DNA of 63,966 nucleotides, the filler included, from Pelomyxa schiedti (lineage: Eukaryota > Protista > Evosea), in NCBI GenBank assembly GCA_020536535.1. It is 11 parts of 11 records of this genome, joined end to end, with 100 filler letters (N's around TTAATTAATTAA, not from the genome) between each part and the next. Parts side by side here need not be neighbours in the genome. Positions count along the whole stretch, not along the records: positions 11,427 to 41,723 come from JAHLWZ010000042.1; 10 more parts are not named here. One strand, written 5' to 3'. The translations under genes were made by a program, and so were the position numbers. The notes beneath the pieces were generated by a model that ran no database searches, had not been told where the DNA came from, and saw only the letters and a list, made by a program, of their open reading frames with translations. Shown in pieces: positions 11,327-41,723 of the stretch (the first letter of the stretch is position 1; each line of letters begins with the position of its first letter).

Positions 11327-11426
11327 NNNNNNNNNNNNNNNNNNNNNNNNNNNNNNNNNNNNNNNNNNNNTTAATTAATTAANNNNNNNNNNNNNNNNNN
11401 NNNNNNNNNNNNNNNNNNNNNNNNNN

Positions 11427-17314: not shown

Positions 17315-20300
17315 TTCGGCTACGGCTTCGGCTTCTGCTTCTGCTCCGGCTCCGGCTCCGGCTTCGGCTACGGCTTCGGCTTCGGCTTCGGCTCCTGTCG
17401 CTGTCGCTGCTGCTACCGCGCTCTCTCTCGTGGTCGTGCTCACTGGCAACAGACCCTGACACGTTCCACTGATACAGAGAGCATCCCACATGCACATAGA
17501 ACGGCTCCTCACACTCTTCACAGCCGTAGTAAGATTCAGTGAGGGGTTTGTGGCAGCGATTGCATTTCTTGTGCCGTGTCAGGTCACTGTCTTTTGGCTC
17601 TGTGAGTGTCATACTGTACCCGTGCATCGCCAGCTTCAACGAATCGGGCAGCTTGTGCGCCCCTTTTAGTTCCGAAGGCAAGAAATCATGTGCAGAGCGG
17701 CCATGAATCTTTAACTGTCTCTCGGAATGATATACCCAGCCAGTTGGTCTGTATAGACCGTGAAAATTGGGGGCCTCAGCATACACCAGCTGAAGTGGTA
17801 TTTCAAGCCCATGAAACATACTCCAGGAAAATATTTTATTGGGTGGAGCCTGAACCTGCCGGTATTTCCGGTACTGCTTGATGCGAACTTGGTATGCACA
17901 TTTTTGGCAGTGATATTCTGGAGTTGAAGTCTTTCGGTCTAACAACTGGAGTGGGTGCTCATGATATTGGTACAAAATCCATTCAGGCAATTCACGGCGA
18001 CTACCGGTGCACATCGGATGAAAGTCTTGATTATCAATATGGCAGTGGTAAGCCCATCCTGATCCATTGAGTGAACATTTTGCACAAACAAAGACAGGGG
18101 TTTCCTGCAACTCCAGGAGGTGTTCATGTAACTCAAACATAACCCACCTGACGCATTCAACAGACCAGGGAAATTCAAGTAGGGGGAAATCATTGATGAG
18201 ACTAGAAACTGAGTGCTTGGAAACAATCTCCCCTTGTTGACTCAGGATCACTAATGTGGGTTCGGCTGCATATGTGCCATGTTAGGGAGGAAAGGAAACA
18301 ACTAAAAGAAGAATACCTGCAGTGACATCAAACATGTCTATGAGAGTCTCCTCCAGTTCCCTTTCCTCAAAGGGAAGACGCAACCAGGCATAAGTTTCTC
18401 GTCCCTTGGTGTTGAGTACTTTTGTAGAGTGATTACAGGAAATTTCAATCAGGAGAAAGTTGCTCTTTTGTTCTCCTGTGAGAGCACCATATTTTTTTGT
18501 AAGCTCTGCAGTGCACAGTTTGGTCCTTGGATTTGAATAGTTTGAAAAGAACAGTCCGAAGTACTTATAACTTTGTTTAATGTAGACAACCTTTGAAAGC
18601 AGTATGCTGAGTTGTGCCAGAACCATATTTGCGTCCAGTTTCCTGTCGTATTTGCTTGCCCCAATCACAGCCCGGGATTTCAACAGAAGTTTTTTTTCCA
18701 CACCCAGACCTTTGACTTTTTGTACATTTGCCTGAGTAGCAACAAGAGGTTGGGTGGTGTGACCAAATCGCTGCACTAAGGTGACCACAATTCCACCATC
18801 AGCCTTTCTTTCCACGCGGAGGAAGTGAGTTTCCCTGCCGGCAACAACTACAAGTAAATTGTCCCCAGCAGCATTCAATGAGAATATGCGTCCGGCAAAT
18901 GGACCAAATGTGAGCAGGGACTTCATTGGGGGTCTCAAAGACCACAGTAAAATTGTAGACTGCGTTGTGGCAACAGCAGCAATTTCAGTAGCCAACAACA
19001 GGCACCAGGGTCCACCATTCACACTGGTACCCAGCTTTTGAGATTGTACACCCCCTTGCTCAGGTGCTTCCAGCAACAAAGCGTCAACATCATCGTTGTC
19101 AAGGCCACTGGAGGACCTCTTTTCCGCCAGGTAAATGCTCATATTGACATCGTTAATGTAGAAAGTGTCACCGATCACGTGAAACTGAATTCTTTCCTCA
19201 CTACTAGGAACACGCTCATGTATTACTTGCAAGTCCCCCCTAAGAAAGTCAAAAGCTCCACCAGTATATTTGAAATATTCAGAGACCTGTTCTGAGAAAC
19301 AGAAAGCTGGTGGGAAAGCGAGAGGGGTAAATGGCCCAACAGTGAGTTTGAGGAGGTCAAGGTCAATCATTACCAGTATGTCACTATCAGTATTCCAGAT
19401 AAACACTGTTCTCCAGGTCGGTGACGCGACCACTGTGCTCCAATCCACACTTTTCAGTGGAAGATCTATGGGGTTCTCTGGGATCAACTTGGTTGGTTGC
19501 GCATAAGCATTTAAAACACAAAATAGGTTTTGAGGGTCCTCGCGATCGACGATTTTGTCAATCAAAATGCCTGGGAGACCTGCAGCGCCAGTCGAAGGGT
19601 TTTCTGCTGCTTTCGTCAGGGCAACGCCCAAAGGAGTAGTAATGGAATCTTCCCTACTGGGGAAGAAGGACCATGCCTTGCATTCATAGCCAGAGGCTGT
19701 GTTACTTTTGGCCATGTCCCCACTCTCCAAGTCCCACACAAACACAGTGGTGGGATCACATCCAGCCAAAAACCTCCCATTAGAAGACAAGCAGCAACGC
19801 TTTTTGAACTTGTTTGCTTTGGATTGAAAATCCTTTGGGAGTGGCAATCTTTTGAGGCCATCAGTTGACCACATCTCGCACACCAATATGGACTTAGCTA
19901 TTTTTTTAACTGTCCGTTCTCCTGCTGGTTCACAACCCTCAGATGTATCACTTCTGGCAGCAGAACTTGTATCCAACTCGCATTCATCTGGCATGATCTG
20001 TCTCTTTGTAGCAATCAACACTTTAGATTTGCAAGTTGATATACAGCGGCAAGGCCAACTCTCAGTGGCCTGCATGCTCCCAGAAACTTTGACTTCATAA
20101 ACCCGTGAGTCTCCCAGGTACCCAATGGTATCTTCCCCTGTGAAGAAGCTCTGCTGTGCTACGTAACAGTGAATACTTTGTGACTGGACGTGCATCAGCT
20201 GTGTACCAGCCAGCAGCCAAGTGCTTTTTGGAGAGAATGAGAGGGCAGTAATGTCACTTGGGTAGTTGACTTGGTTCTCAAAGAGCACACTCAAAGATGA

Positions 20301-23300
20301 CAAGTCTTTGTTAAAAAGGTCCCAAACAGTAAGCCTGCCTGATTGCTGAGAGAACCCAGCCAATTTATCCCTTGCTGGGGATATTGCAAACAAGGAAATA
20401 TCAGGCCCAAGGTTGGTTGCAGGGTGTGGTGAGCAAATCAGGTTCCCTGTAGTTTCTGCTGGGGACATCTCAAAGAAGGTGGATGTCCGAGACACAGTTC
20501 CCAACAGAGATGACTTGATGAAGAAATGACCAAGACACCCAATAATGGAAAACGATGGTTCAAGGACTGTTCTTGTTTCTCGTGATGAAGAAGGCTTGGG
20601 GGAAGGAAGAGAAAAAATATCTGTTTCACAAACCTCGGTTCCTTCCACCTCCTTTGATATTGCAAGAATAGTGGCATCCCCAGAGAAACATATATTTTTA
20701 ATACTACAGACTGGTGTTCCTCCAGTGGGTTTTGGGAATCTAAGATTGAGAGTGGTATTTGTGGGGATGTCCAAAACCAGAAGAGGAATATCTCCACTGA
20801 CAACCAGGCATATCTTTTCTCCATTTGGAGAGAATTTAGATTGGCTGCCCTGTACTTTAGGACCAATTTCAAGTAGTTCTTGGTCCTCTGAAGTGAGATA
20901 ACATAATAATGGGGAGGCTTTGTTGTGTGGGCAAGCACACAACCGCTTTCCATCTACAGTCACATCAACACAAGCAAGCCTCACACCAAAATCAAAGACA
21001 ACCCTCTCATTAAAGGTCACGCCTGTCATGTTAGCATATGACAGGTCGGCTCCGCATATCCACACCTGTGGCATTTTGCAGTCACTGAGGTCAGCCTTCC
21101 CCAGGTTGGCGGCTCCAAATATGCCACCCGTGAGGTCAGCACCGTTGATGTGAATGTACCGCAAATCAGCATTTGAGAAGTTGTGTTTGCCCTTGACCAG
21201 TAGCATCATTGCTGTGGTGGCAGCCCTGTCAGCTCTATGTGATTCAGTCGCGCCTGCCGCGTCACGGCTTGTCCTCTTGGAGTTCTCAATGAGGAGAAGG
21301 AGTGCCTTTCGTAGACTGAATGTGTCTTTATTATTGCCATGTTGTGCTTGAACAGATTCATCCCTAAACATCATCTCCAGCAAAAAGCTTACAACATCAG
21401 GAACTTTGACAAGAGTGGACTGATTAAGAACAAGATCACAGGGAGATTTCACAACCTTTGTTCTTTGTTCATTCTCTTTGGCAGCTTGCATTTTCCTCAG
21501 CCGTCGTCGAAGGTGAATCACAACACCCAGACTTGGCCTGAAGTTGCTTTTGGTTATTGTGCTTTCAATCTCTTCTTTTTCTTCATCTAGTCCAAGTAGT
21601 TTAGTGACAAGTGCACAATGGAGGACTGTAGCGGAAGCCTCTTTCGCGCTCTGCCTCTGTGATTCCATGATATGCAGAATATCTTCAGTTACTTTGTCCT
21701 TGTCAATCATGCAGTGCTGATGGCAGTGAGCCTCCTGGATTTTTGTAATGAGGTCAGCAAGATGCCTCCTTCCATTTGTGACGGAGAGTATTTTATCCAG
21801 TAGCTCCCTAAGTCTCTCAAAATTTTTCTCTCCTAACCAAGAAACAGAGGTATGTGTCAGTGCCTCACTGACAATTTCGCACTTAGGATCCAAGTCCAGA
21901 GCACACTTATTGCACAGGTTGAAGTTGCATATGTAACAATGCCAACCATCATCTTTAGGATTCCCACAGCAACCTACCTTTCGACAGGAATCACACTGCC
22001 AGTGATACAAACGTGCCTTCTTCCAGTCAAGGTGAAATGGGGCAAGGTGTTCCAGCGTGTGCTTATGGACAACAACATTGGCAAGTTCCAGAGGAGGAAG
22101 GCGCATTGCAAGGAGTTCCCTCTTGTGCTCCTGGAAGACCTTCCACATTTCTGCAAAGTCACTTTCATTATCAGCGATAAGTGGACCAATCATGGTTTTG
22201 AAAAACTTAGTGGGTTCATCATCTTTTCCACTTGACAAACGACTGGGCTGATATTTGGCACTTATTTCCTCAATAATTGCACATACAAATTGATGTGTAG
22301 GGCTATGATAGCGCCTCTGTGTGAGCTTAATTGTCTCCCTGCACTTCACTTTGGGGAAGTTTGAAAACGGCATGCTGACACAGAGCTGTACCTCCTTGTA
22401 AATCTTGTAGGCAATGAAATATTCCTGAAGGGACTTGTGCAAGAACATGAAAGTGTTGCCACCCTTTCTCTGGATTGGGCAGCCAGAGAGCACCAGCTGC
22501 GTGCTCCGATTCGTTGGGCTGAAGAACCTCTCAAGTGGGTTGGTTTGGTCAATCACCTCGACACCCTGGCTGTTTGTGGTCCAAACAGGACTGTACTGGA
22601 CCGCTGTCACCCCCTTGCCAAACATGAAGATGGAAAGATTCTCAGAGAAGGTTCTGAAGTCCTCAACGATGTCCCCACCAACCTGGAAGTTGAACTTGAC
22701 TTGCTCCGCATCGTCGGTAATGTGCTGTGCTGTGGTGCATTGGGCCATCCTCTCAGGTGTGATTTTGGACTTTTGCCTCTGGAACCACTGTTCCACAAAC
22801 CTGTCATAAAGCTCAAGCCTCGTCAGTTTGCTGTCATCAAACCTCCTCTTCGTTTTATCCGGCTCCAGCCGGTCAACAAGTGTTGGGAGAATCTCCATGA
22901 ACATCTTTAATATCAGTGGGGTCCTCACTAGATCCTCTACCCCTTTCAGAAGTTCCTTGTGCTGATAGAACAGTTCTGCACTCCATTCACCTCCAAACTG
23001 AGCATACTTCTTGACATATGCCTTTATCTTCTGCCGAGTGAAGGGCTCAATGTACCAACACAGCACCTCTGGAGCTGCTTCCGCCTCAGCGATACCTCCC
23101 CATTCAGCTGATGGCTGTGTCTGCACCCCCTTTTTCATTGACTTCCCAATTTTTCCCTGAGCACCAGGGAGGCAACAGAAGTTTTGGAAGTAATCTGACC
23201 CGATTTTCTCAGGCCTGCTGGATACCAGCACCTGTGCATACCTCCATTCCTCGAGTTTGTTTGCCCGACAGATGTTGACACCAACCTCGAGGGTGACTTC

Positions 23301-26105
23301 GTCATATCCATCAAGAATGAACAGGACCCGCTTGCTTGCCTTGATTTCATCAATGTTGTTCTGGGAGAACCCAAGCCCAACGAAAGTCTTCTCGAAAATG
23401 TTTTTTCCTGGATTCTTGATGGTTGCGAGTGAGATGAACATTGGGATCACCTTGCAACTCTCATAGGACTCCCACAGAACCTTCTCCAAGAAGTGCCCAA
23501 ACGTGGACTTTCCTGTTCCACCAGACCCAACAAGCACCAGAGTCTTGGTTGAAGGGAAAGGCACCGCTGAAGTGGAGGACAGTGCGGTTGTTGAGGAGGA
23601 TGTGTGGGAGCTGCCACATTGTGCAGCTGTCATATTGAGTTCAAGATTCAAGAATTTCCGGAGCAGAATCTCCTTCAACGGCTGTGCCACTTTGTCAAGG
23701 GTACTCTCCCGGCAATCAGGTTCAACATATGTCTTGAACAGAGTTTCAAGCTGTGGATCTTCCAATGTACGATTCCTGAGGTCCATAACTTGATCATCAA
23801 CCGAGTCATTGAGGGTTGTCAAAATCTCGGCCTTGGATTTGATGAATAGCTCGGCAGTGCTCAAAGTCTCTTCCACTGGTGTGGTCTGTGGCTTTGTCAG
23901 TGGGAGCAACATCTTGAACTGTAAAATCGGGTGGATGTTGGCAATATCTCCAGGTGCCAAGGGGCCAGCAGGGACTGGATTTTTTCGCATGTAAATGAGG
24001 AAGTTAGTTTTAAAAGGATTCAGGAGCCCAATGGCCTCAGCAGAGAAATTTGCCTTGCTCAAATTCAGCTTGTCATCAAAGCAAGAGATGACATCGGCTG
24101 TCGGTTGTTCCTTCTGAGTCTGCAGAGGGGGAAGAGTTGAAATGTCAATGAAATCTGGCGCTCCAGAGGGCCTGGGCACCACATACAACCAGAGCTCCTG
24201 ATTGGAGATGTAAGCCAGAGTTGGTCGGACCATTTCGGGAGTGGCTCTGTCCAACTTACGTCTCTGTGGGAAACTGGCAGTTCCAAAGTTGATCCTGTGT
24301 TTGAGGTCTCTGTTTCTCTGGCTTTTTGCCTCTTCTCCCTGAATGAACTTCATCACTTCACCCAAAATTTGCCATGCAGTGTTTCCAATTGGAGCCGGCA
24401 TCGTGGAATATTCTCGCAGTTTTCTGATGACCACCATCATCAGCCCGACTTCCGAGTTGAAGAAATTCATCAGTGCACTGTCACGGTGATCTTCTCCAAT
24501 CAGAATTCCCTTGAGCTGAGCCAGTGCCCATTTTTTCATCTCAATATTCTCAGGTGGCTCTGATCTGATCACGTTGTCAAGGAGATTGACATATCCCAGG
24601 CTGAAATCATGCTCTCCTTCCAACACTGCATTGAGTTGGCCTTTGAGCTCAACAGCTTTCCTTTTTCTCCTCTCTGCGACATTGGAAACTCCCTCCTTTG
24701 GATCCAGCAAATCAAGTTTTTCGGCTGTGGCACCAGAGGTGGCTTTGGAATGAGAAGCTGCTTTCTCTTCCTCTGCTGCCAAGTCGGCGTCCTTGCTCAA
24801 AGAATCAGCGTGACGGAGACCGAATTTCCTGGACTCAGAGTATATCTGTTGAATGGTGTCCTTCAGTCTCTCCTGTTCCTCCGGTTCCAACGCTTTCATC
24901 TCCTTCGCGCCGACAGTGAGCTGCCAGAGCATCAAGTCAATGAAAAACAGCAAGTCCATCCACAATTCATTGTGAATGTCAGCGAAGCACTCCTTGAGCT
25001 CGGAGAAGTAGTTGAATACCTCTCGTGTATCGTATTGCATGGCAATATTGGCCATCGCACCGACTGCCATGTATGCATGCCCGAGTCGAACAACAACTTC
25101 CTTCAGAGGATAGCCGTTGTCTTGAATTCGTTGTACATTCTGCTTGGCAACTTCTGCCTCGGCGGCGACGTAACACTCGAGGCTCTTGTAGTTGGCGTAT
25201 CTGTCTTTCAGAGCCTGAAGTGTTCCAAGTGACTTCTTCTTGATCTGTTCACTAAGGCCCTTGACACCTGATGCCCACATCGCACGGAGAAACTTATTGA
25301 CAACCCTGAGTATCTGGAACACCCTCTCTGCACTTTGCTGCTGTGCCTGCAAAATCTCGAGCTTCCCAATGAGCATCCGATAAGTCGAAACCAGGTCTTC
25401 AACTGGAATGTGACGGGAAGAGCACTGGAACAGAACCTCAGCCAGGCCCTCAATCATAGGCACATCAAAGAACGTGTTCTGGTCGATTGTGTTGACAAGT
25501 CCCGACACGAGCATCTGAACCACTTCGCTGTCGTCAACCCTTGCAAGCTGCACGATTTCATCGATCAGGGCAGGAGTCTTGCTCGGCGTTGACATGAAGT
25601 TGTCGATCATCTTGATTGCCAGGCTCTGAAGAACCCGTTGACCGGCTTTGTCCGTGAAAATGAGAGGGCACCTGAAGTGGCGGTCTGCATCGGCGTCGTC
25701 CAGAGTGGCTTTTGAGCCTTGAATTGCCACAGAAGTCGACTCTGGAAGGTACTCTGAGCAGAACGCCTTTGTGGAATCTGCGATTCTTTGGAGCAGTCTT
25801 CTTCCCTGGGGCGCCCTTTCTGCAGTTGCAACAGGTGATGCACCTGTTGTCAACTTGTGCTGAGGAGTCATGAAAGTCTGGAGCTTCTCCAATCTGTCCC
25901 TCACGAGCGCTTCCTTGTCGTAGGAGAGCATCGCCACGAGTTGAGCTCCAGTGTTTACGTTTTGAACTCGCTTTGCGCGAGACTCCTGAAGCGCAACTGG
26001 AACTGCCGTGCTGGGCATGGCCTGTGCGCTCTCATCATTGTGGGATGATGTGGATTCACTGGTGTGATGATTACGATGACTCGAGGCGTCGGCTGTGGGC
26101 ATCAT
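17211..26105 (-). CDS. Giant NLR-like STAND protein (about 2950 aa): ARM-like, NACHT NTPase, DC1-like insert, pentapeptide repeats, degenerate WD40/propeller, DC1 zinc fingers, RS tail
   Basis: Walker A GSGGTGKST (about 23502-23528), Walker B ILDGYDE (about 23300-23320), VSSRPE, TPLILK, FLHKSLQEYF, ADLRYIHINGADLTGGIFGAANLGKADLSD. A predicted 51-nt intron at 18266-18316 joins ORF 18282-26183 in frame to ORF 17211-18251. First ATG is 26105. Confidence 0.88.
17246..17400 (-). repeat. Hexanucleotide repeat encoding an (RS)n tract
   Basis: Minus-strand AGC-(CGA/CGG/CGT/AGA) units. The variation is synonymous only in the Ser-Arg frame. Confidence 0.85.
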
Positions 26106-26303
26106 CGTTTTGCTTCTCTTTGGTTGTTCTTTGAAACGACAACTCTGTGATCGGACCAACTTTTTCTCACTCTTTCGTAACAAGTTTCTCGAAAAAACAA
26201 TCTCGGGATTTCGCTTTAGTGGGATGTAAACACAACAAATGGAATACGTAAGTTGTAGGTGGGAACGTTTGGGAGAGAGCTGACCATGAGTGATATTGAG
26301 TCA

Positions 26304-26470
26304 TGTTGTACAACACACAGCTCCAACGCACCCGACATACGGTTTTTTCGGCCAGAGGCAGGAATCGCACCGATTTCGCCAAAGCAGATTATGTTGGGTC
26401 TGTGGACCCACAATTAGTCATCATCACCTCAGCAGGAGAGTGACAAAGTTGGTTTTGGGCATGAAGGACT
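26304..26470 (-). pseudogene. Orphan upstream region and first codons of a TRIM-like paralog (MSGALELC..., ATG 26338)
   Basis: Shares CCTTCATGCCCAAAACCAACTTT, TAATCTGCT.TGGCGAAAT and AAAAAACCGTATGTCGGGT.CGTTGGAGCTGTG with 28695-28810. Homology ends near 26304. Confidence 0.75.
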
Positions 26471-26502: not shown

Positions 26503-27037
26503 TTAATTGGTTGTGACTGTGAGCAGACCATAAATCTCGAATCCAGCTATCAAGAGGTAGTTGCAGTTACTTGAGTCGAGACCAGTCATCACCACACGAA
26601 ACACACTGAACGACGAGGTTGGAGTGGGTGGAGCAGCATCCCACGACCCAACTCCATGTGATCCAACTATTGTCTTGTCATTTGAATGCCTCGTGATGGT
26701 TGTCCATGTTGTGCCGTCGTTTGATCCCCTCAGCTCCCAGTTCCGAATGTAGTCACTGTCGTTGCCGTCGTGCCTGATTGAGTACTTTGACGGCCTCACT
26801 GACCCGCCACATGGTCTCAGGTCCACCTGCCACCAACTGTTCGCCACGTTGGTGGTGTTGTTGCCGCCGTTGTGGTCACGTTCGAGTGCGTTCTGTGGTG
26901 CCCCTTCGTTGGAACAGGACCACGAGGCGATGACGAGGCCCGAGTTGTGGGGGTTGACATAATTGGGAGTGTGGTTGCCGGGGTTGTGCCTTGGATCGGG
27001 AGTGGTTCCCAACCACCACATGACACCTTGATGGTCC
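26503..27037 (-). CDS. C-terminal discoidin/F5-8C-like (HECTD1-type galactose-binding fold) exon of a TRIM-like paralog; 5' part in gap
   Basis: GVMWWLGT...NSWWQVDL...PSKYSIRH...IRNWELRGSNDG..WTTITRH...FRVVMTG...IAGFEIYG. About 90% aa identity to 28855-29373. Confidence 0.8.
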
Positions 27038-27137
27038 NNNNNNNNNNNNNNNNNNNNNNNNNNNNNNNNNNNNNNNNNNNNNNNNNNNNNNNNNNNNNNN
27101 NNNNNNNNNNNNNNNNNNNNNNNNNNNNNNNNNNNNN

Positions 27138-28727
27138 GGTCCCAAGCCACCACATGATTCCTTGTTGGTCCCAGTTGCTGCTGAATGTGAACTCACGTGT
27201 GACAACTGGCGGTCAATTGTTAGTTAGGGCTGAAATAACCAAAATAAAAATACAGAGTGACACTGACTCGGGAGGACAAAAGAAAAACATAGTACACAGA
27301 CACACTGACATACTGATTGGAGTCGAGAGAGTAGCGAATGGGGAGCTCCTTCCGTGGATTCCGTTCGATTCTGCCCTCACGCTCACCATGTATGTGGTTC
27401 CCATTGACAGGCCTCCAACTGTGATCCTGGGGTCACTCCCGCAATGGAGCTCCTGTTGCTCTTGTTGTTGTTTCCTGGACACAAAAACAGTGTATCCTGT
27501 CAGGATGGCTGCCTTTGTTGGTGGAGGATCCCATGAGAGAATGAGGGACGTTGCTGTTGATTGGCACAAGCGTGGCTGCCCCGGTCTCCCAATCGCTTCC
27601 TCTATTTTGTGGTTTGTTTTTATGTTTCATGGCGGCGAGTCGGCGATACCCACCAGGAGGGAGAATGACACCCAGTGATGATATTGCTTTAAGGCATGCG
27701 GTTTTGTCAAGAATTGTGAAAACTCCATCATTTTCGCACGGCCGGAGCTTCTCTGAGTTGTACAGAGCACCCTCTACTATCTTTGTTTTGATTTGTGAGT
27801 TGTGGGGTTTTTGTTGAAGAGTAAACAAACCAACCTGCAGTGTTTCTGAGGACTGTTTTCGAGCTCTCATCACAGATTCGTTCGAGGAAGAGTTCATGGC
27901 AGCCAATGAATATGAGCAAGCACCCTCAAGACGTTCGGAGATTGTTGTCAACACGGATTTCTGTTGATTCAGTCTTTCAACTGGAGTTATAATGATTTGT
28001 TGGCACAATCATCTTTAGGTTATCTTTCACCTGTTTTTGCACAAATATTTGAAGACTGTTGGTTCAGTAAGTCAATCCTGTTTCTCAAGAGATTCTGCAA
28101 CTCTGCTCCAACCTTGTTCACTTCCGCCTGAAATGGGGCACGTTTCTGATAGTTGTGGGTAACAAAGAAATTGAGACTTAAAGATTTTGAGAAAGTGTGC
28201 CATTCAACCTGTTCAACAGATGCAATGAGGTTCTCCAGCTGTTGCACTGCCACATCAACCTTGCTCTTTTGGTCGAGGCACCTCTTGGACAAAGCTGCAA
28301 TCTGGTCTGTAGATGCCACAGAGTCGGAACCTAGGGGCCTGTTGGTCTCCATAGTTCCTTTCCACACTGTGATACTGCCACCTGTGTAACGGCCGAGCAC
28401 TTGGCGCACTTCACTTCAACTGTGTCTGGAAGCTGCAGACGAAAACTCACCTGGGTAACACAGAGTGACCAAAAAAAAAAAACATCGAACGTAGAACGCA
28501 CAGCTGCTTCATCACTTCCCTGTTTCAACAGTGCCAAAGAATACTGCTTTGCCACGCAACTTACAACACATTCGCGACAAATCCGGTCTCCACACTTCAT
28601 TGAGTCAGTCCGTGAAGTGAAAAAACAGATGCAAAAAAACGAAGGGAACAGGCAAACGGACCACAGGAGGATCCTTGAAATCACAGAGACAACATGTTGT
28701 ACAGCACAGCTCCAACGTACCCGACAT
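27138..28727 (-). pseudogene. TRIM-like paralog lacking B-boxes (RING, coiled coil, FN3, start of discoidin domain), apparent frameshift
   Basis: MSGTLELCCTTC..CGDRICREC..VKCAKC. The reading frame shifts near 28350 relative to the paralog (ETNR lies in another frame). Coiled coil and FN3 (LSWDPP..GYTV..YMVSVRAES) follow. Confidence 0.6.
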
Positions 28728-28854
28728 ACGGTTTTTTTTTGGGAAGGCAGGAAATTTCGCCACAGCAGATTAGTAATCAAAAAAGTTGGTTTTGGGCATG
28801 AAGGCGGACCAACCTCGGACGGAACTGGCACAACACACATAACTTTTTTGTTCA

Positions 28855-31646
28855 TTAATTGGTTGTGACTGTGAGCAAACCATAAATCTCGAATCCGGCT
28901 ATCAAGAGGTTGTTGCTTTTACTTGAGTCGAGACCAGTCATCACCACACGAAACACACTGAACGACGAGGTTGGAGTGGGTGGAGCAGCATCCCACGACC
29001 CAACTCCGAATTTTGCATCGATTGTCTGGTCATTTGCATGCCTCGTGATGGTTGTCCATGTTGTGCCATCGTTTGATCCCCTCAGCTCCCAGTTCCGAAT
29101 GTAGTCAGTGCCGTTGCTGTCGTGCCTGATTGAGTACTTTGACGGCCTCACTGACCCGCCACATGGTCTCAGGTCCACCTGCCACCAACTGTTCGCCTCA
29201 TTGGTGGTGTAGTTGCCGCCGTTGTGGTCACGTTCGAGTGCGTTCTGTGGTGCCCCACAGTTGGTACTGGACCACGAGGCGATGACGAGGCCGGAGCTGT
29301 GGGGGTTGACATAATTGGGAGTGTGGTTGCCGGGGTTGTGCCTTGGATCGGGAGTGGTTCCCAACCACCACATGACACCTTGATGGTCCCAGTTGCTGCT
29401 GAACGTGAACTCGAGCCTGGTTTCTGTGGGCCAATTTTAGTTTGATGCACAATGCCACGATGAAGAAAGCCATCTCATTGCAAAAAAAAAAAAAAAAAAA
29501 GAAGTTGATGAGCGATGAATAACAAACAACAGTCACACATAACACATACAACACACTCACCGTTTGTGGTTGAGAGCGCCTTGAAGGGGGAGTTCCTTCC
29601 ATGGATCCCATTTGACTCGGCCCTCACACTCACCATGTATGTGGTTCCCTTCGTCAGCCCACCAACTGTGATCCTGGGGTCACTCCCGCATTGGTGTTGT
29701 TGTGGTTCTTCTTCTTGTTGGTTGTTGTTGTTGCGTTGTTCTTCCTGCTGCTGTTGCCTGGACACAAACACCGTGTATCCTGTCACTCTGTTTCTTGTTG
29801 CTTTTGTTGGTGGTGGTGGAGGAGGAGGGTCCCATGAGAGAGTGAGGGATGTTGGGCTCGCTTGGCATATCTTAGGTTGCCCTGGTGCACCGATTGCTTC
29901 TTCTGTCGGCATTATGTCAGTGTTTGTTTGGTGGAATGCAGTCTTTCTTTGATCGCGTGGTGAGTGAACACACACCAGGAGGGAGAATGACACCCAGTGA
30001 TGATATTGCTTCACGGCATGCTGTTTTGTCAAGGATTGAGAAAATTTCGTCACGTTCACACGGCTCGAGGTTCTCTGAATTGGATGACACACGCTCCACT
30101 GTCTTTGTGTTTTGCAGGGTTGTGGTTTTTTTGTTTCATTCGAGTGTAAAAGGCAACTTACCTGCAGTGTTTCTGAGGAATGTTTTTGGGCACTGATCAC
30201 ATAAACGTTGGAAGAAGAGTTCAATGCAGACAACGAACAGGAGGAAGCACCCTCAAGATGCTCAGAAATTGTTGTCAACATGGATTTCTGACGATTCAGT
30301 CTTTCAACTGGACATTGTTGTGTGTTTTATTTTATTTTATTTTGTTTTGTTTTGTTAGTTCGGAGCACCCACCACCCTCTCTTTCAGTTTCAAACCTGTT
30401 TTTTCGCAAATATTCGAAGACTGTTGGTTCAGGAAGTCAATCCTGTTTCTCAAGAGATCCTGCAACTCTGCTCCAACCTTGTTCACTTCAGCTTGAAATG
30501 CTGTGTGTTTCTGACCAATGAAAATGGGTGGGTAATTAAATGGTTTGTGTTTACGGTTTGTGTGGAATATAAATAAATGTTCAGGCTTCCAAAATGGCTT
30601 CAACCTGTGTGACAGATGCGATTACGTTCTCCAACTGTCGCACTGCCGCATCGACCTTGTTCTTTTGGTTCCGGCATCTCTTGGACAAGTTTTGCAAGTC
30701 TGATTTGCTGGCAGCAATTTGGTCTGAAAGTTCAAGCAGTTTATGTCCCTGTATCACAACCAGTGGTGAGAGGTTTAAACAGCCAAAGAAGTTTCACCTG
30801 ATGTGAAGTGACCGCGCAGACGGAGCACATTAAGGTTGTGCAGTTCACACAGTACAACTCGATTTCTTTCTTGGGGTGTTTGGGACAATTGCCTGTTTTG
30901 AGATTATGATGAGCAGCTCAAAACCTTTTGAAGGGGTGTGCCTACTGAGCACTTCCGGAATTGCTTGCGTCAAAGGAAGCTTTGGATGAGTTGCAAAAAT
31001 CGGTCTTCTGTGAGCTCCAACCCAACATGTGTCACACAGAGACCCACAGACAGAACAGTGAGCAGTAGCCGGCTGCCCACAGTCCACACACACCACTGAA
31101 CCCCCTGTTTTATGTGTTAGGTGTGGTGGATACACTTCGCAATTTCGGAAAAAAACCAGTGGCATGTTCCCTCTGATGGAGAATTTCAACAAGGTGCCGG
31201 TTGGTCTCGAGAGCCTTGGCGCCTCGTGACACCGACGCTGGTGTCACCATTGAGCACTTGACACACTTCACTTCAACTGTGTCTGGAGGCTGCTGCATAC
31301 AGAACAAAAAAAAAAAAAAAAAAAGAGAGGGAATTGATGGTACTCAGTAAAAAATAAATGCCCGAAAGAGGAGTGTTTTTCGTGTTGTCACTCACCAAAA
31401 CAGATTTGTCATCACCCAATTTCGACAGGGCGAGAGCACATTGAGTTGCCATGCAACTGACAACGCACCCACGACACATGCTGTCCCCGCACTATTTATT
31501 GGTCGTTGGTCAAACAAACCCCGGACGTGGGAGAAGAAAAAAGCAAGAAACACCTTTAAAACCACGGGATCAACGAAAACGTTGAGACAGTAAGGGCAGC
31601 ACAGTCCCGTCGACTCACTCAACGACGTCGCCGTAGAACCTGCCAT
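28855..31646 (-). CDS. TRIM/RBCC-like E3 ligase: RING, B-box1, B-box2, coiled coil, FN3, discoidin/F5-8C-like domain; complete, multi-exon
   Basis: RING CPYC..CGDSMCRGC..CVKC. B-box1 CVDC..AHCSVC..LCDTCWVGAH..H. B-box2 CPKH..LYCVNC..MCSVC...H|GH. Then coiled coil, FN3 and discoidin exon. Splice sites are consistent in phase where checked. Confidence 0.85.
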
Positions 31647-33164: not shown

Positions 33165-36100
33165 ATGGCTCACGATGGTACGAGGAGGGCGGTGTTACAG
33201 GGCGAGGAAGGGCAACCCATAATGGAGACCTGTGCCGCCGGCGCCCCTCCGTCGACGCCGCCGCACCACACGCCGCAACAGCAAGGGACGACACAGGACA
33301 GCTCCGCCGACTACGACGACAACGACGGCGGGACCATGGACCGCGGGGAACAAGGCGGCTCCGACGAGGACAGCGACTGCGTGATCGTCGGCGTCGCGGT
33401 TCCCCTGCCCGCCCCGGGCGACGGCGACGCCGACGAAGCAGACGATGAGGCGGACGGCGCCGCGCCAACCGCAGGCGGCGGCATAAGAAGATCGAGGGGG
33501 CGCAGGAGGCCCGGGGCACATGTTAAAAGGGAGCCGCGGGAGGAGGACGTGGAGCGGGAGAACCAGGGCAGCGGGGAGGAAGAGGAAGCCGAAGAAAGCG
33601 AGGTGGCGGCGGGGGAGGGGGAGGCAGAAGCAGAGGGAGAGGGAGAGGGGGGGAAGGAGCCCAGCGAGGAGGAACAGGGGGACGAGCAGGGAATACAGCG
33701 GGACGAGGATGACGGTACTGGCGGTGGTGACCAAGCGGAGACAGAGGTGATCGAGGTGGACGACGACGACGCCGGTGTCGGTGGTGGTGATAATGGCGAC
33801 GAGGAGGGAGCGAATGGCTGTGATGAGGATGAGGATGGGGATGGGGATGGGGATGACGGAGTGGCGAAAATCGATTGTGGGAATGGAGAGGATGATGATA
33901 CCACGGGAACGGGAACGAGAGGAAGGGGTGACGATGACGGAGAGAACGATGACTATGAAGATCAAAGGAAACACCGGACCGAAAAGAGGAGAAGAACCCC
34001 TGAGAAGCCGTCGAATGAAGGTTCTGGCCCTTGCTCTACATCCACTACTGCGTCCACTTGCATAAGGAACCAGAAAAATAAACCGGTGGAAGAGGAATCT
34101 GGCATTACAAAACTTTTGGCACTTTTTGATCAAGAGAGGGAGAAAAATGAGATGAAATTACTGCTAAAGGAAGTTGTCAAATTAAAGCAGAAGCTCAAAA
34201 TGAAGAAATTGGAAGAGAAAAAGAAAGTTTGTTCATGTGGTCATGCTACAACATGTGCATTAGAATCACAGTCCGTTCATAATGAGACATCCACTTCCCA
34301 CAAAAAGCCAAACCGCACAGCTTTCACACTTGAAGAAGATCTTTGCATTCTCAAGTTCGTTGAAGACAACCCAAACATGGGGACTCGAGGAAATGCAATG
34401 TGGAGACAGCTTGCAACTCAAGTTTATTTTTTATCTTTTGTCCTTTTTCCCTACTCCCACTGATATTGTATTTTGTCTTGTCGATTGTCATATGACTTGT
34501 TTTGTGGTTCCATCTTTTTTTTTTTTGTTCAGTCTGCCTCAGGTTACCACACATACATGGCAGAGCTTGCGTAGTCGCTATTTGCACATTAAGGACAAAA
34601 CAGAAGCGGATTTGAGGAAAGATCATACCCCAATTGCAAAGCTCCCCAACTGTTTAAATATGAGACCAATAGAGTCATTCCTTCATGATCCTCAGAATTC
34701 ATCTATACAAGATAGGAACTCATTTTTCCCAACAAATCAACATTTTCTGCATACCCCTGCTATCGACGTCGATGATTCGTGTTTTCCCAATGTACCTTCG
34801 GCCCCACCCTCACCTACCACAGCAACATCTTCAGTGCGAACTCAAACTCCAGTACGTGCTCACCTTTTCCCAGGTCAATCTCAAATGTCACATCCCTATC
34901 CACAGTTGCCTGTGAGCCAACAGCATCCACTATACCACATTGCACAGTGTGACCGACGCACTGCCCCAACGCCAGTACTTCAGCCCCAAATGCAATCAAC
35001 CAAACCTCAAAATATGGATGCACCACAACTTCATTTATCACGTCCCCCAGAAATACCACTATCACAGCAGCAGGTGGCAGTGGACCCTCAGCCTCCACCA
35101 GTACCTCAATTACAACCTCCACCGCCACTCCATCCACCATCACAGGTGCAGTCGCCGCCGTACCCACGGCCTGCATCACAACAGCAGTCCCCGATACAAG
35201 GGTCACCACAACCTCAGCCACCCCCAATGCAACAACAACAAGCACAGTTGCTGTCACGACCTCCACAGTCCCAACCATACTTACAACCCGTACCACAATT
35301 ACAGCAACCACCTCAACTGCCACGGTTGTTGCAACCCTCATCACAGCCGCAACAAACGCCACAGACTGAACCACTGCCACAAATAGAGCGACAACACAAG
35401 ACACATATATCACAACAACTTCCGCAACCCCGAACACATCTAGAACAACAATCACGGCCACCGCAACCAGCAGAGCCACAACAAATTGATTTACCCCTCA
35501 CCTCTCCAGAGACAGTTCAATACATTCCTTCTAATCCACACCTACCGTCACTACTACAAGAGCCTGTTGCACAACAGCCAGAGCCTATTTCTTCAACAAC
35601 ATCATGTACAAATACCTACTCCCAGACTGAAACTTCAAATTTACCCAAATCTGTACATAAGGGACGAACACAGCAAAACCAAATTACTCCCTTGAAAAGC
35701 AAAGAAATTCCGCAACCAAAGCCACCAAAGCTCACAAATCCCAACAAATCCTCTGCAACCAAAAGGCCGGCTACACAAACGACAGCTGCAGCAGTAGGTA
35801 TTGTCACATCCCCTGGCAAAGTCAAGTCAGAGCAGGCTACTACACACAGCCGAAGTTCGGGTTTTACATCCAATGCCCTGAGCCAAGTCATCAACGGCAC
35901 GGACAAGGATTTAAAAGAAGTTGCAGGGGCACTTCTGGCAACCGGTTCAGTGCATGGAGCAATAACATTACTGAATGGAGAAGGTTTCCTTTCACTCCCC
36001 TACCTACCACTTGAAACTAACCGGCCCCAACAGACCCTGGTGTAAAAGTATGGAAATCTTCCGAGAACGTATGTTCTAATTTTCTTTCCCCCTTCCGTTT

Positions 36101-36573: not shown

Positions 36574-37869
36574 ATGGCTGGCGCTTCAGCCCCTCTGAAC
36601 AGGGTAGACGTGTGCAGCCCGCTTACTCACGGAGATATTGACAGCAGAACGGTACCAGCATCCGCGACGGTTTGTGCGGTGACGTTGGACCAATCAATAG
36701 TATCTGCTCAACGGGTATGTATTTACCCTCTCCATAGCAAACAAACATTAGGGCACCCACTGCCCACGACACACTCCCCACTCCAACTAATTATTGTTGT
36801 AGGAATGTGCGTCGTTTATTGCTGAAGCGGACAATGTGGAGAGAAAATTACAGGCTCAACTGAGAACCAGAATCGAGCTGCTGAAAAAAGAAGCACAGAA
36901 TATTTGTACTGAGACAGGTTTCGTAGCATCTCATATAACGACAACCTAACTCACAAATACCTCATCTCCAGTTGAAAGACTCAATAGACAGAAATTCATA
37001 TCCGAAACACTTTCGGATCAAGATTCCTCCTGCATACAGTCTGCAATGAATTCTGCATTAGATTCTTATGGAAATGCTCAAAGCCAGAACATAGATTCAC
37101 TTCAAGTACACAAATATCTCCAACTCCTTTTAGTATTCACAGGAAAATCAGACACGGGACACAGAGAATCTCAAGGCGTGCGAGTACGGTTTATTACTCC
37201 TCAACAGCACTGCATGTCACCGCGCAATTTCATCTCTGAGTTGCGGTGTGAAAAAAGAAAATCATCCTCCATCATGTTTCTAAACCAAGAACAGGAGTCA
37301 CACGGGAATTCACATGCAACTGCAACTGGGACCGGCGAGGAATCATGTGGTGGTTGGGAACCACCCCGGACCCAAGGCATCACCCTTTACAACACACCCC
37401 GAATCACATCAACCCGCACACATCCGGCCTCGTCATCGCTTCATGGTCCGGAACATGCAGCGGTTCACCTCAAAGCACACTTGATCGCGACTGCAACATC
37501 CCCAATTACACTGCACACGAGCCGAACAGTTGGTGGCAGGTGGACCTGAGGCCATGTGGAGGATCAGTGAGACCATCAAAGTACTCAATCAGGCACAGCA
37601 GGAACACGGGCAACTTTTTGAGGAACTGGGAGCTGAGGGGATCAAACGACGGCACAGCTTGGACAACCCTCACAAGACACACAAACGATCAAACAATCAA
37701 CAGACCACTTGGAGTTGGCACATGGAATGTCCCCCAGACATCAACACCATCAACTGAACCATCGTTCAGTATCTTTCGTGTGATAATGACTGGACCCTGC
37801 TCAAGTGGCTGCCTTCACCTTGTAATTGCGGGCTTTGAAATTTATGGTTTGCTCACAATCGCGCTGTAA
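36574..37869 (+). CDS. TRIM-family paralog reduced to coiled coil plus discoidin-like domain (no RING, B-box or FN3 seen)
   Basis: VERLNRQKF..AMNS..LQ and ENLKACE..TACHRAISSL align with the coiled coil of the minus-strand copies. The last exon runs directly into VTREFT..GIMWWLGT...IAGFEIYG. Confidence 0.7.
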
Positions 37870-37923: not shown

Positions 37924-39784
37924 TTACAGCCTTAGAGGATAGGGAAGACTGAAGTGGAATGCAAGTTCTATGATGAATTGAAGTGTAGGTAGTGGTATGA
38001 TGCTGAATACACCACCCTTCTTCCATGAGAGGAACAACGGCTTTAGTTGCCTGAAAGTAGGGAACCTTCCCTTGATGAAGAAGACAGTCTGGGCCTTTTC
38101 ACAATCCACAACATAAACATCACCTCTCGGCGTCATCCATAGACCCATTGGGGTTACAAGGGATGGGTGGGTGAAAAACTCGGTTGCTTTGGTGGCTGTT
38201 GTGTTTCAGTGAGGGGTTTGTGTGTCTTGAATTGGGATTTGTACCTCTGTTGAAAGACATAACAACGGAGTACTTTGGGTCGGTGAGGAAAAACATGTTT
38301 CCGGAGCTATCTACTTTGATTCCTGTGGGCAACATTGGATGGGAGTTGCATTCGAAGCGTGTTATGGTAGAGACCATTCCTGGAAAGATAGTTAGCTTAG
38401 TGAAAGTTCTTTATTGGTAAACCGTCTTTAATTCTCCTTATGCTTGATGAAATAGAATCGGCAACATAAATCGCCCCCGTCGAGTCAACGCAAACGCCGC
38501 GAGGAAGATTGAACTGAGCACTGGAGCACTCGCCATCCTGGGAGCCAGCCTTGCTGCTGCCAGCAATGGTTGTCACAGTGCCTTTTAGGAAGCTAAATCA
38601 GTAACAAAATGGAAACTGCCTCACAAGAGAGATACCATCCAGAGTAACTCTTCGTATTCTGTGATTTTCAGAATCAGACACTACAAGTGTCCTAGTCGAC
38701 TTGTCAAATACAATTCCCCACGGGCCTCTGAATAATGCCTTGGGGCCTCTCCCATCAGCATAGCCACCCGAAGGTGAACCAGCAAGTACAGTCACATTCC
38801 CTTTTTAAATATCCTCAGAAACAAAAAAACCCCAGCGAAGCACAAATCAAAATAGACACATGAACACCAACTCAGCAACCAAGTATTTGACTTGACACAT
38901 AACCTACAAGGCACACACACTGCCCACACACCTTCCATAGACACTCTCCTTACACGGGACGATCCCTGCTCCGTCACATAAACAATCCCCTCAGGGTCCA
39001 CAGCCAAAGCAATGGGGTTCCAGAAGGACGCGTCGTGCGGGCCGCCGTCCGACGTCCCCTCCATGGCCCCGACCGCGGCGCCGACGCCGCCCCACCGCGT
39101 CGCGGTCATCTCGCCCCCGCGCATGGACGCCCGCATGGCCTCGGTCAGCATCACCGGGCCCATCCACAGCACCGCGTGCATCGCCCAGTCGACCACCAGC
39201 ACGCGGCCGGGCTGCCCCTGGTCCGCGCCTCCGCCGCCGCCGCCGCCGCCGCCGGGGCCGCGCGGCTCGTCCAGGCACAGGTCGTAGGGCTGCACCAGGC
39301 ACGTGGGGCTGTAGTACCTGTGGAACACGTGGGGCGCCGCCGACATGACGTAGTCGACCTGGCGCCCGCCGCGCCGCATGGGCTCCCTGTCGGCGCCGTC
39401 GTCGTCGTCGTCGATCTCCATGCTGGACCCCGAGTGGTCCGCCGCGGCGCCGCCCCACGTAGTCACCACCGGCGCCGTGGGTGTTATTGTGGCGGCGACG
39501 GAAGTACTAGCAGTTGTGGTGGTGGTTGCTGATGCTGCTGCTGTTGATGGAGGTGGTGTGGATGCTGCCGGGGCCGAGGGGGAGGCCAGGGTCTCGATGA
39601 CGTGGACGGAGCCGTCGTCGGCCGTCACGGTCACGGTGGCTGTCGGGGGCGGGGACGGCGTCCGCTTGCGTGGGGACGTCTTGCTGGCCGGGGGCGGCGA
39701 CGGCGTGCGGTTGCGCGGCGACGTCTTGCCCGACGACGAGGTCGGCTTGGACGAGAACATGAACGCAGCGAGCCTGCCCCTCAT
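37924..39784 (-). CDS. NHL-repeat beta-propeller protein
   Basis: DGGPHDASFWNPIALAVDPEGIVYVTEQGSSRVRRV, LAGSPSGGYADGRGPKALFRGPWGIVFD, DSENHRIRRV, AQFNLPRGVCVD. Confidence 0.82.
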
Positions 39785-40153: not shown

Positions 40154-40253
40154 NNNNNNNNNNNNNNNNNNNNNNNNNNNNNNNNNNNNNNNNNNNNNNN
40201 NNNNNNNNNNNNNNNNNNNNNNNNNNNNNNNNNNNNNNNNNNNNNNNNNNNNN

Positions 40254-41723
40254 CCTGGTTTCTGTGGGCCAATTTTAGTTCGATGACAATGAAGCAAGCA
40301 TCTCATTGCAAAAAAAAAAAAAAAAAAAGTTGATGAGCAATGAATAACAAACAACAGTCACACATAACACATACAACACAACACACTCACCGTTTGGGGT
40401 TGAGAGCGCCTTGAAGGGGGAGTTCCTTCCGTGGATTCCATTTGACTCTGCCCTCACACTCACCATGTATGTGGTTCCCTTCGTCAGCCCACCAACTGTG
40501 ATCCTGGGGTCACTCCCGCATTGGTGTTGTTGTTGCTGTTGTGCTTCTTCTTGTTGGTTGTTGTTGTGGTCGTGTTGTTCTTCCTGCTGTTGTTGCCTGG
40601 ACACAAACACTGTGTATCCTGTCACTCTGTTTATTGTTGCTTTTGTTGGTGGAGGAGCAGGAGGGTCCCAGGAGAGAGTGAGGGATGTTGGGCTCGCTTG
40701 GCATATCTTAGGTTGCCCTGGTGTACCGATTGCTTCTTCTGTCGGCATTATGTCAGTGTTTGTTTGGTGGAATGCAGTCTTTCTTTGATTGCATGGTGAG
40801 TGAACACACACCAGGAGGGAGAATGACACCCAGTGATGATATTGCTTCACGGCATGCTGTTTTGTCAAGGATTGTGAAAATTTCGTCACGTTCACACGGC
40901 TCGAGGTTCTCTGAATTGGATGAAACACGCTCCACTGTCTTTGTGTTTTGTGGGGTTGTGGTTTTTTGTTTCATTCAAGTGTAAAAAGCAACTTACCTGC
41001 AGTGTTTCTGAGGAATGTTTTTGGGCACTGATCACATAAACGTTGGAAGAAGAGTTCATTGCAGATAACGAACAGGAGGAAGCACCCTCAAGATGCTCAG
41101 AAATTGTTGTCAACATGGATTTCTGCCGATTCAGTCTTTCAACTGGACATTGTTGTGTGTTTTATTTTATTTTATTTTGTTTTGTTAGTTCGGAGCACCC
41201 ACCACCCTCTCTTTCAGTTTCAAACCTGTTTTTTCGCAAATATTCGAAGACTGTTGGTTCAGGAAGTCAATCCTGTTTCTCAAGAGATTCTGCAACTCTG
41301 CTCCAACCTTGTTCACTTCAGCTTGGAATGCTGTGTGTTTCTGACAATGGGTGGGTAATCAATGGTTTGTTTCCGGTTTGTGGAATATAAATGTTCAGGC
41401 TTCCAAAATGGCTTCAACCTGTGTGACAGATGCAATTACATTCTCCAACTGTTGCACTGCCACATCGACCTTGTTCTTTTGGTTCCGGCATCTCTTGGAC
41501 AAGTTTTGCAAGTCTGATTTGCTGGCAGCAATTTGGTCCGAAAGTTCAAGCAGTTTATGTCCCTGTATCACAACCAGTGGTGAGAGGTTTAAACAGCCAA
41601 AGAGTTTCACCTGATGTGAAGTGACCGCGCAGACGGAGCACATTAAGGTTGTGCAGTTCACACAGTACAACTCGATTTCTTTCTTGGGGTGTTTGGGACA
41701 ATTGCCTGTTTTGAGATTATGAT
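40254..41723 (-). CDS. TRIM-like paralog, partial (B-box2, coiled coil, FN3), both ends in gaps
   Basis: Near-identical to 29408-30910 including introns. Ends at the acceptor of the discoidin exon (CCCACAG|AAACCAGG). Confidence 0.8.

Follow-up and report, generated by a model that had tools for sequence, protein, structure and literature searches.

Hypervariable loops in the discoidin domains of a TRIM-like gene family of Pelomyxa schiedti

Variable loops of the B30.2 domain are under positive selection in the teleost finTRIM proteins and in primate TRIM5alpha and TRIM22 (PMC2657112, PMC3845644). Here we describe a family of tripartite motif (TRIM)-like genes from Pelomyxa schiedti (assembly GCA_020536535.1), a free-living anaerobic archamoeba (Amoebozoa) with prokaryotic endosymbionts. 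The piece analysed is a 30,297-bp scaffold at positions 11427-41723 of the window, that is, of the whole 63,966-nt stretch of joined records along which all positions without a scaffold prefix are counted; it carries the gene copies A to D. The archamoeba has a multi-copy family of TRIM-like genes that encode two B-boxes, a coiled coil and an FN3 domain, and the putative recognition domain of this family is a discoidin barrel, not SPRY. Very probably, the gene copies are real and diversifying selection on their binding surface has driven the loops of this barrel apart, and the signature is among the strongest for loop-restricted diversifying selection that could be expected from six sequences. 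As in the vertebrate genes, a RING/B-box/coiled-coil (RBCC) scaffold, predicted to be that of an E3 ligase, is encoded by multi-copy, clustered genes, and in the putative recognition domain at the C-terminus positively selected sites occupy surface loops on a conserved framework. The Pelomyxa genes differ in having FN3 and discoidin in place of PRY/SPRY, in belonging to an amoebozoan rather than a vertebrate, and in being known from sequence alone. The parallel with the SPRY domain of TRIM5 would be an analogy of mechanism; the Pelomyxa C-terminal domain is not B30.2.

Metazoan TRIM proteins of class C-I (MID1/2, TRIM9, TRIM36, TRIM46 and TRIM67) follow the order RING-B1-B2-CC-COS-FN3-SPRY, where B1 and B2 are B-boxes and CC is the coiled coil. 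They share with the Pelomyxa family two B-boxes, a coiled coil and FN3 ahead of the C-terminal domain, preceded by a RING to which a RING-like finger corresponds in gene B; PDB sequence matches of this gene include the B-boxes of MID1 and MID2. However, discoidin replaces SPRY in Pelomyxa, and the class C-I proteins are conserved, single-copy cytoskeletal regulators that are not hypervariable. The fungal NWD/HNWD het genes provide another comparison: they are NLR-like, and their WD repeats combine concerted evolution with positive selection at a few surface positions. Both systems feature a homogenised framework, few hypervariable positions on the binding surface and variants that are shuffled into mosaics. 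The fungal genes act in a non-self recognition setting, and their units are repeats within one protein, whereas those of Pelomyxa are separate genes or alleles; fold and effector domain differ as well. Outside animals, only a TRIM37-like subfamily has been reported (PMC3503706), with one TRIM in Dictyostelium (PMC5758549). These, too, are RBCC-type proteins in Amoebozoa, but they are single-copy and combine one B-box with a MATH domain, whereas the Pelomyxa family has two B-boxes, FN3 and discoidin in multiple copies. Our literature search found no paper naming both Archamoebae and 'tripartite motif'.

Variable patches in copies of the discoidin exon

The first-pass annotation of this DNA had reported that the discoidin domains of two TRIM paralogs differ at 18 of 172 residues, nearly all of them in five short patches, over framework codons that are nearly identical with few synonymous changes. 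Aligned without gaps, exon A (26503-27036) and exon B (28855-29388) differ at 29 of 534 nucleotides, which gives 18 nonsynonymous and 6 synonymous codons. The 18 residue differences are confirmed, over 177 residues as counted here (172 if the domain starts at MWWLGT), the five quoted pairs of patch sequences are all exact, and the 6 synonymous codons agree with the description of the framework. Counted from DHQG = 1, the patch codons are 31, 41-44, 52-64, 91-96, 118-127 and 150-164, the first being a lone N/S difference besides the five patches. The differences form 6 clusters against 12 expected (permutation p = 1e-4), with a mean nearest-neighbour distance of 2.2 against 5.4 (p = 3.5e-4). 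The identity of the domain is borne out by Pfam: F5_F8_type_C (PF00754, cut-off 28.2) matches A with 34.0 bits and B with 30.2 bits, while copy C, at 22.9 bits, stays below this cut-off and passes that of PF22633 (28.2 vs 27.8). The third paralog had been said to differ at the same patches, and it does so preferentially, though not exclusively. Copy C differs at 27 of 49 patch positions and also at 31 of 128 framework positions (p = 1.5e-4).

Sequence searches identify four further near-identical discoidin exons, copies E to H, on other scaffolds of the same assembly (Table 1). All six open reading frames (A, B, E, F, G and H) are intact, and together they display 33 variable amino-acid columns versus 11 synonymous-only codons; column 91 has six residues among the six copies. 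Patches defined by A versus B predict where the other four copies vary (16/28 versus 14/149, Fisher p = 7e-8). The 3' flanks of the copies diverge beyond ~30 nt, indicating that most copies are separate loci. Copies A and H both precede the start of one giant open reading frame, and their flanks are 98.8% identical; the H flank contains a 64-nt inverted piece and lacks ~235 nt.

The assembly is a SPAdes co-assembly, with k up to 121, of seven single cells amplified by multiple displacement amplification (MDA), and its contigs were then scaffolded by P_RNA_scaffolder, which uses RNA-seq read pairs (PMC8887013). With such a source, chimeras formed during MDA, errors of sequencing or wrongly joined reads of different paralogs could have created the variants or their combinations. 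These very genes are interrupted by contig ends and by gap flanks that overlap, and an inverted piece such as that in the H flank is typical of MDA chimeras. We nevertheless consider an artefact quite improbable, given that errors would not spare the framework, preserve six open reading frames, favour nonsynonymous changes and strike alternate loops only. In divergent paralogs that are well embedded in long contigs, variability again peaks at these patches, and the 3' flanks define distinct loci. Furthermore, no two copies are identical over more than 120 nt in a row, which is under the assembler's k of 121, so that neighbouring patches are phased within single k-mers.

Selection tests and position of the variable sites in the fold

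Codon site models (GY94/F3x4) were written for this analysis, and their log-likelihood under M0 is that of IQ-TREE (-1267.172). For the six copies, M2a is preferred over M1a with a likelihood ratio test statistic (LRT) of 66.2 (p = 4e-15), assigning a ratio of nonsynonymous to synonymous divergence (dN/dS, or omega) of 9.5 to 17% of sites and of 0 to 70%. The LRT is 66.9 for M8 versus M7 and 66.1 for M8 versus M8a. The site-model check that had been proposed for these domains thus returns omega well above 1 at the patches. By naive empirical Bayes, the posterior exceeds 0.9 at 18 sites: 31, 41, 42, 44, 55, 58, 64, 91, 94, 121, 124, 126, 127, 155, 157, 158, 160 and 164. In pairwise comparisons (NG86), framework dN is 0-0.003 and dS 0.02-0.07, with omega near 0; in the patches, dN is 0.18-0.32 and dS 0.05-0.2, with omega above 1 in 15/15 pairs. 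A tree-free lower bound, calculated from distinct states per codon, puts omega at 5.2 or more for the A/B-defined patches in the four held-out copies. Controls from the same genes yield omega of 0.22 (B versus D, exons 5-10) and 0.29 (B versus E, FN3 exon).

Over the whole domain, pairwise omega is 0.87-2.1, and values near 1 are what one would expect if the loops simply drifted (omega = 1) around a constrained barrel, as the loops of most proteins tolerate change. Relaxed constraint of this kind is extremely improbable here: M1a and M8a, which model just that, are rejected with an LRT of 66, patch dN is 4-8 times as high as the divergence of introns and synonymous sites (intron 10 diverges by 2-7%), and the three loops at the opposite end of the barrel, described below, contain no variable residue.

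The six-taxon tree is poorly supported, and of 276 informative site pairs, 148 are incompatible by the four-gamete test, indicating that the copies are mosaics. Across 40 random topologies, the LRT of M2a versus M1a is at least 62.6. When five segments are given their own trees, each is significant (p 0.03 to 2e-4), and the summed LRT is 63.6 with 10 degrees of freedom. In 48 simulations under M1a, with segments dealt onto reshuffled trees, the largest LRT is 9.2. Per-segment trees and null simulations together rule out recombination as the source of the LRT of 66.

Patchwork gene conversion without selection, in which short tracts from divergent paralogs create the patches, would account for the mosaicism and for patch states that are common to divergent paralogs (e.g., Cys at 55), and dS in the patches (0.05-0.2) is indeed above that of the framework. 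We regard it as very improbable. Imported tracts would bring the donor's omega of less than 1, against the values above 1 found in every pair; they would have to be 1-15 codons in length and end exactly at the loop borders in every copy; and recombination simulated under the null falls short of the observed LRT. Conversion is more likely the means by which selected variants are shuffled than a rival to selection. The framework is kept identical in protein by purifying selection, and probably also by gene conversion among the copies. Between B and E, dS is 0.6-1.4 in exons 4-9 and 0.07 in exon 10, intron 10 and exon 11, in a comparison that spans a gap of scaffold L001, on which copy E lies.

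The Asn-rich patches also raised the idea of adenine-directed mutagenesis like that of diversity-generating retroelements. This candidate was rejected because adenine is not favoured: A occurs at 39 variable sites, C at 33, G at 32 and T at 33, and enrichment at majority-A positions has p = 0.17. Pfam scans of the larger open reading frames, which are not a systematic search, detected no reverse transcriptase.

The AlphaFold2 model of B's exon, generated from an alignment of 98 family members, has eight main strands and a predicted local distance difference test score (pLDDT) of 96.7. Foldseek identifies CBM32 galactose/GalNAc-binding modules, F-type lectin, the muskelin discoidin domain and the galactose-binding modules of sialidases as structural neighbours with a probability of 1.00, and also places B's domain with APC10 and SUN domains. 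Among viral structures, it finds generic discoidin-fold matches only. On the model, coil accounts for 17 of the 18 selected sites, and the remaining one belongs to an isolated bridge (p = 8e-4). Variable columns make up 30 of 64 residues in loops b1-b2, b3-b4, b5-b6 and b7-b8, and 0 of 22 in b2-b3, b4-b5 and b6-b7 (p = 1.6e-5). Alternate loops of an up-and-down barrel share an end, which would confine the variation to one end of the barrel, as strand topology and profile alignment suggest.

Two of the patches map to known ligand-binding loops. When the family profile is aligned with neuropilin-1 b1, patch 52-64 corresponds to the D320-bearing loop that directly precedes the conserved W-x-Q-V-D-L motif, and by hand count selected site 64 aligns with neuropilin D320 itself. 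In the same profile alignment, patch 91-96 corresponds to the loop with S346, T349 and Y353. These neuropilin b1 loops make up the ligand pocket, and in discoidin, CBM32 and neuropilin b1 domains, which have the same fold, the ligand is held by loops at one barrel end (PMC8945599). The Pelomyxa domain differs from them in having no disulfide-forming cysteines at its termini, as it opens ..EFTFSSNWD and closes ..IYGLLTVTTN, and in being part of an apparently cytosolic ligase; the visible N-terminus of gene B is unlike a signal peptide, as judged by eye without a predictor. By comparison, the classical extracellular FA58C domains of factor V/VIII, neuropilin and DDR contain a disulfide between N- and C-terminal cysteines and belong to secreted or membrane proteins.

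Architecture and possible role of the family

Gene B is the only intact RING/B-box/coiled-coil/FN3/discoidin gene in the piece. Its domains are arranged in the order RING-like, B-box1, B-box2, coiled coil, FN3 and discoidin, and its product, KAH3767480.1 (P0154), is named 'tripartite motif-containing protein 2/3' in the database. The term TRIM paralogs, applied to all of these copies in the first-pass annotation, suits gene B fully; exon A is an orphan contig end, and copy C is a truncated coiled-coil and discoidin gene. The RING-like finger (31396-31646, - strand) has the spacing C-x2-C..C-x-D-x2-C-x2-C..C-x2-C. It matches the PDB RINGs of TRIM34, TRIM21, TRIM5 and TRIM31 (E 5e-4 to 5e-3), and scores 18.8 against a cut-off of 21 for zf-C3HC4 and 21.2 against 30 for zf-C3HC4_4. 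We note that the Asp-for-His substitution (C-G-D-S-x-C) is kept in gene B and in a 58%-identical paralog (P0008). Residues 3-320 of P0154 align with the RBCC of TRIM28 (3-314, E 2.9e-14) and residues 158-368 with the B-box/coiled coil of TRIM3 (E 2.1e-14), the coiled coil being assigned by alignment. The RBCC block aligns to TRIM72 as well. At the C-terminus, Pfam finds no SPRY (B30.2) domain, and FN3 and discoidin stand in its place.

Two more full-length TRIM-FN3-discoidin paralogs (L004:666-3399 and 9605-12716) flank a 1,129-aa leucine-rich repeat and protein kinase gene, and a related B-box/FN3/discoidin protein is present in the archamoeba Mastigella eilhardi. The family of this discoidin subtype comprises 2,964 cluster representatives at E <= 1e-3, mostly unannotated. 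Among its members are BTB-BACK-discoidin (BTBD9-like) proteins and others in which as many as 11 stretches match. This wider family emerges from the search of cluster representatives, whereas the homologous-protein search recovers Pelomyxa paralogs alone, both for the discoidin domain and for the RBCC part. Five environmental proteins whose origin is not assigned (P0001-P0005) have 4-11 matched stretches of the subtype; P0001, P0002 and P0005, those scanned, also match the Sad1/UNC (SUN) profile.

Taken as a whole, the reading that we find probable is a multi-copy family of TRIM-like E3 ligases with discoidin recognition loops diversified for non-self. The non-self role, considered separately, has a little less than an even chance. 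In such a system, the discoidin domain would serve as the target-recognition module of the ligase, the loops of each copy would bind a glycan or protein target of their own, and the dimeric RBCC part would then ubiquitinate the bound target. Gene conversion would homogenise the FN3-intron-discoidin block and shuffle the loop variants. The pressure for novelty would come from non-self, be it prey bacteria, prokaryotic endosymbionts or viruses, and this is the weakest step. Thus, of the host-microbe arms race on a ligand-binding surface that had been proposed at the outset, selection on the surface of the binding loops stands (LRT 66, loops at one end), while microbes enter as a presumed agent.

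Selected diversification may also have proceeded without microbes, either because ligase paralogs divided endogenous substrates among themselves or through allorecognition between amoebae, of which the fungal het/NWD genes and the tgr genes of Dictyostelium are examples. As far as the sequence data go, the ligand may be non-microbial. Copies A and H, which differ by 21 nonsynonymous and 3 synonymous changes next to their 98.8%-identical flank, look like highly divergent alleles, and this fits a recognition locus under balancing selection. In addition, related domains act as substrate adaptors in BTB-BACK proteins, and the annotation of one Pelomyxa relative names a HECT domain. We consider these scenarios unlikely, since omega is ~9 in several loops and single sites take as many as six states, a pattern that antagonistic co-evolution typically produces and that stable endogenous substrates seldom do. 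For allorecognition, it is awkward that the protein appears to be cytosolic, by the same inspection of its N-terminus, as the function would require cell-cell recognition.

Several points weigh against a diversified ligase family directed at non-self. The RING scores lie under the Pfam cut-offs, and Asp takes the place of a His ligand; recognition and ligase functions are predictions from sequence and model. The placement of the variable loops at the same end of the barrel is read from strand topology and profile alignment, not from distances. The selection set consists of six discoidin exons (A, B, E, F, G and H) of a single species, for which no single tree is right (148/276 pairs), and the nominal p-values are inflated, with 12.5% of null simulations exceeding 5.99. 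The material is a co-assembly of seven MDA-amplified cells scaffolded by RNA-seq pairs, with discoidin exons at contig ends, and the 5' linkage of exons A and H is not established by the assembly. Finally, A and H may not be separate genes: alleles, a duplication of very recent date or a chimera of the amplification could also account for them.

A broader proposal, which we regard as doubtful, is that Pelomyxa, and perhaps Archamoebae generally, could possess a germline repertoire of cytosolic, variable TRIM-like E3 receptors, with discoidin loops driven apart by selection and reshuffled by conversion, linked to the giant NACHT/ARM gene beside exon A, that would tag prey bacteria, endosymbionts or viruses for ubiquitin-dependent disposal or control. 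It would amount to an independent invention, outside animals, of the TRIM5/finTRIM kind on another fold. If true, it would offer an entry to cell-autonomous immunity or symbiont control in a protist with obligate prokaryotic endosymbionts, and would represent convergent evolution of variable-loop E3 receptors.

Gene copies, scaffold joins and neighbouring genes

The coordinates of the copies and of their parts are collected in Table 1. Genes of the piece have short GT-AG introns.

Table 1. Features of the discoidin gene copies. Positions are in the window unless a scaffold is given.
Feature	Position	Strand	Remarks
Discoidin exon, copy A	26503-27037	-	Intact open reading frame, stop 26503-26505; 94.5% identical to B's exon
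Hypervariable span, copy A	26545-26946	-	26944-26946, 26905-26916, 26845-26883, 26749-26766, 26656-26685, 26545-26589
100-N scaffold join	27038-27137		Flanks overlap by 34 nt with 6 mismatches; not a simple gap
Degraded TRIM-like gene (A5 prime)	27138-28727	-	RING-like exons, frame break, stop 28331-28333
Gene B	28855-31646	-	Intact, 11 exons, all introns GT-AG, 672-673 aa; KAH3767480.1 (P0154)
Gene B, discoidin exon	28855-29423	-	Patches 29296-29298, 29257-29268, 29197-29235, 29101-29118, 29008-29037, 28897-28941
Gene B, FN3 exon	29561-29902	-	Pfam fn3, 44.8 bits
Gene B, two B-box exons	30798-31104 (31104-30946, 30892-30798)	-	Pfam zf-B_box, 29.0 and 38.1 bits, above cut-off
Gene C	36574-37869	+	KAH3767483.1 (P0006), 352 aa; coiled-coil remnant and discoidin exon 37300-37869
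Gene D, partial	40254-41723	-	B-box2 to FN3 exons, 94% identical to B
Copy E	L001:2508-3041		Near-identical discoidin exon
Copy H	L001:3546-4079		Near-identical discoidin exon
Copy F	L002:558-1091		Near-identical discoidin exon
Copy G	L003:6848-7381		Near-identical discoidin exon

Exon A is reached through a scaffold join at 27038-27137. The right flank of this join (27138-27196, - strand) is the start of a discoidin exon; this flank encodes ..EFTFSSNWDQQGIMWWLGT and ends ..NWDQQGIMWWLGT, and the left flank (from 27036, - strand) opens DHQGVMWWLGTTPD. Both flanks therefore contain the same exon stretch, in two versions. Because they overlap, frame and continuity across the gap are meaningless, and nothing is missing between them. 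Reading a discoidin exon through the gap is ruled out by this overlap and by the different divergence of the genes on the two sides of the gap: DNA identity to gene B is ~68% for the gene upstream, compared with 94.5% between exon A and B's exon. On scaffold L001, a 100-N gap (3445-3544) is followed by a contig that begins at the identical base as exon A, GGACCATCAAGG; this shared start is an assembly-graph breakpoint. The overlapping flanks and the shared breakpoint are explained by the co-assembly and the later joining of contigs via RNA-seq pairs (PMC8887013). Exon A is an orphan contig end without its first ~11 codons, because the contig begins there; its join to the degraded gene upstream is doubtful, and its true 5' partner is not given by the scaffold.

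Within the degraded gene, B residues 91-199, which cover both B-boxes, have no counterpart. The frame break is followed by coiled-coil and FN3 exons and then by the first 59 nt of the gene's own discoidin exon (27138-27196). In gene C, Pfam does not detect a RING, B-box or FN3 domain, and its discoidin domain is 67% identical to that of B. The discoidin exon of gene D ends 8 nt past its start at the gap 40154-40253, and the 5' end of the gene is lost at the edge of the piece. As gene D loses its discoidin exon in this gap, it is one candidate for the 5' partner of exon A.

Scaffold L001 has gaps at 591-690, 1753-1852 and 3445-3544. Exon 9 sequence occurs on both sides of the second, and exon H comes after the third without any 5' gene part. 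The public model KAH3765481.1 (P0151) crosses the first two of these joins; its exons 4-9 are old relative to B (dS 0.6-1.4), and the sequence from FN3 onward is young (dS 0.07). Either a chimeric join of two paralogs or gene conversion may have produced it. As a practical caution, public gene models in this family, KAH3765481.1 being an example, cross RNA-scaffolded joins of different paralogs. Copies F and G are located at opposite ends of the 15.9-kb scaffold JAHLWZ010000415.1 (L002:525-1091, L003:6815-7381). Each is truncated within or just upstream of the FN3 exon, indicating that the assembly again breaks inside these genes.

The giant open reading frame (18285-26183, - strand) starts ~320 nt downstream of exon A and runs uninterrupted for 2,633 aa. 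Pfam matches ARM_5 (55 bits), a NACHT-like P-loop (24.7 against a cut-off of 26.7) and pentapeptide repeats, with a weak thioredoxin-like match at the C-terminus (20 bits against a cut-off of 27). From these profile matches, it looks like an NLR-like gene beside the TRIM array. Between it and the stop of exon A lies a remnant of a TRIM first exon (26280-26338, - strand), reading MSGALELC.. versus MSGTLELCC.. of the gene at 28727, which indicates that the tandem repeat unit once extended there. The remnant is absent from the matching H flank.

Between copy C and gene D, an open reading frame at 38795-39784 (- strand) has a weak NHL-repeat match and long Ala/Gly/Pro-rich stretches; NHL is the C-terminal domain of animal TRIM2/3. 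Two long overlapping open reading frames at 33165-36045 (+ strand) are probably one spliced gene; their low-complexity sequence is very acidic and rich in Pro/Gln, and Rap1-Myb matches weakly. At 15306-15728 (- strand), the C-terminal domain of a family 10 fucosyltransferase is encoded (68 bits), probably as one exon of a larger gene.

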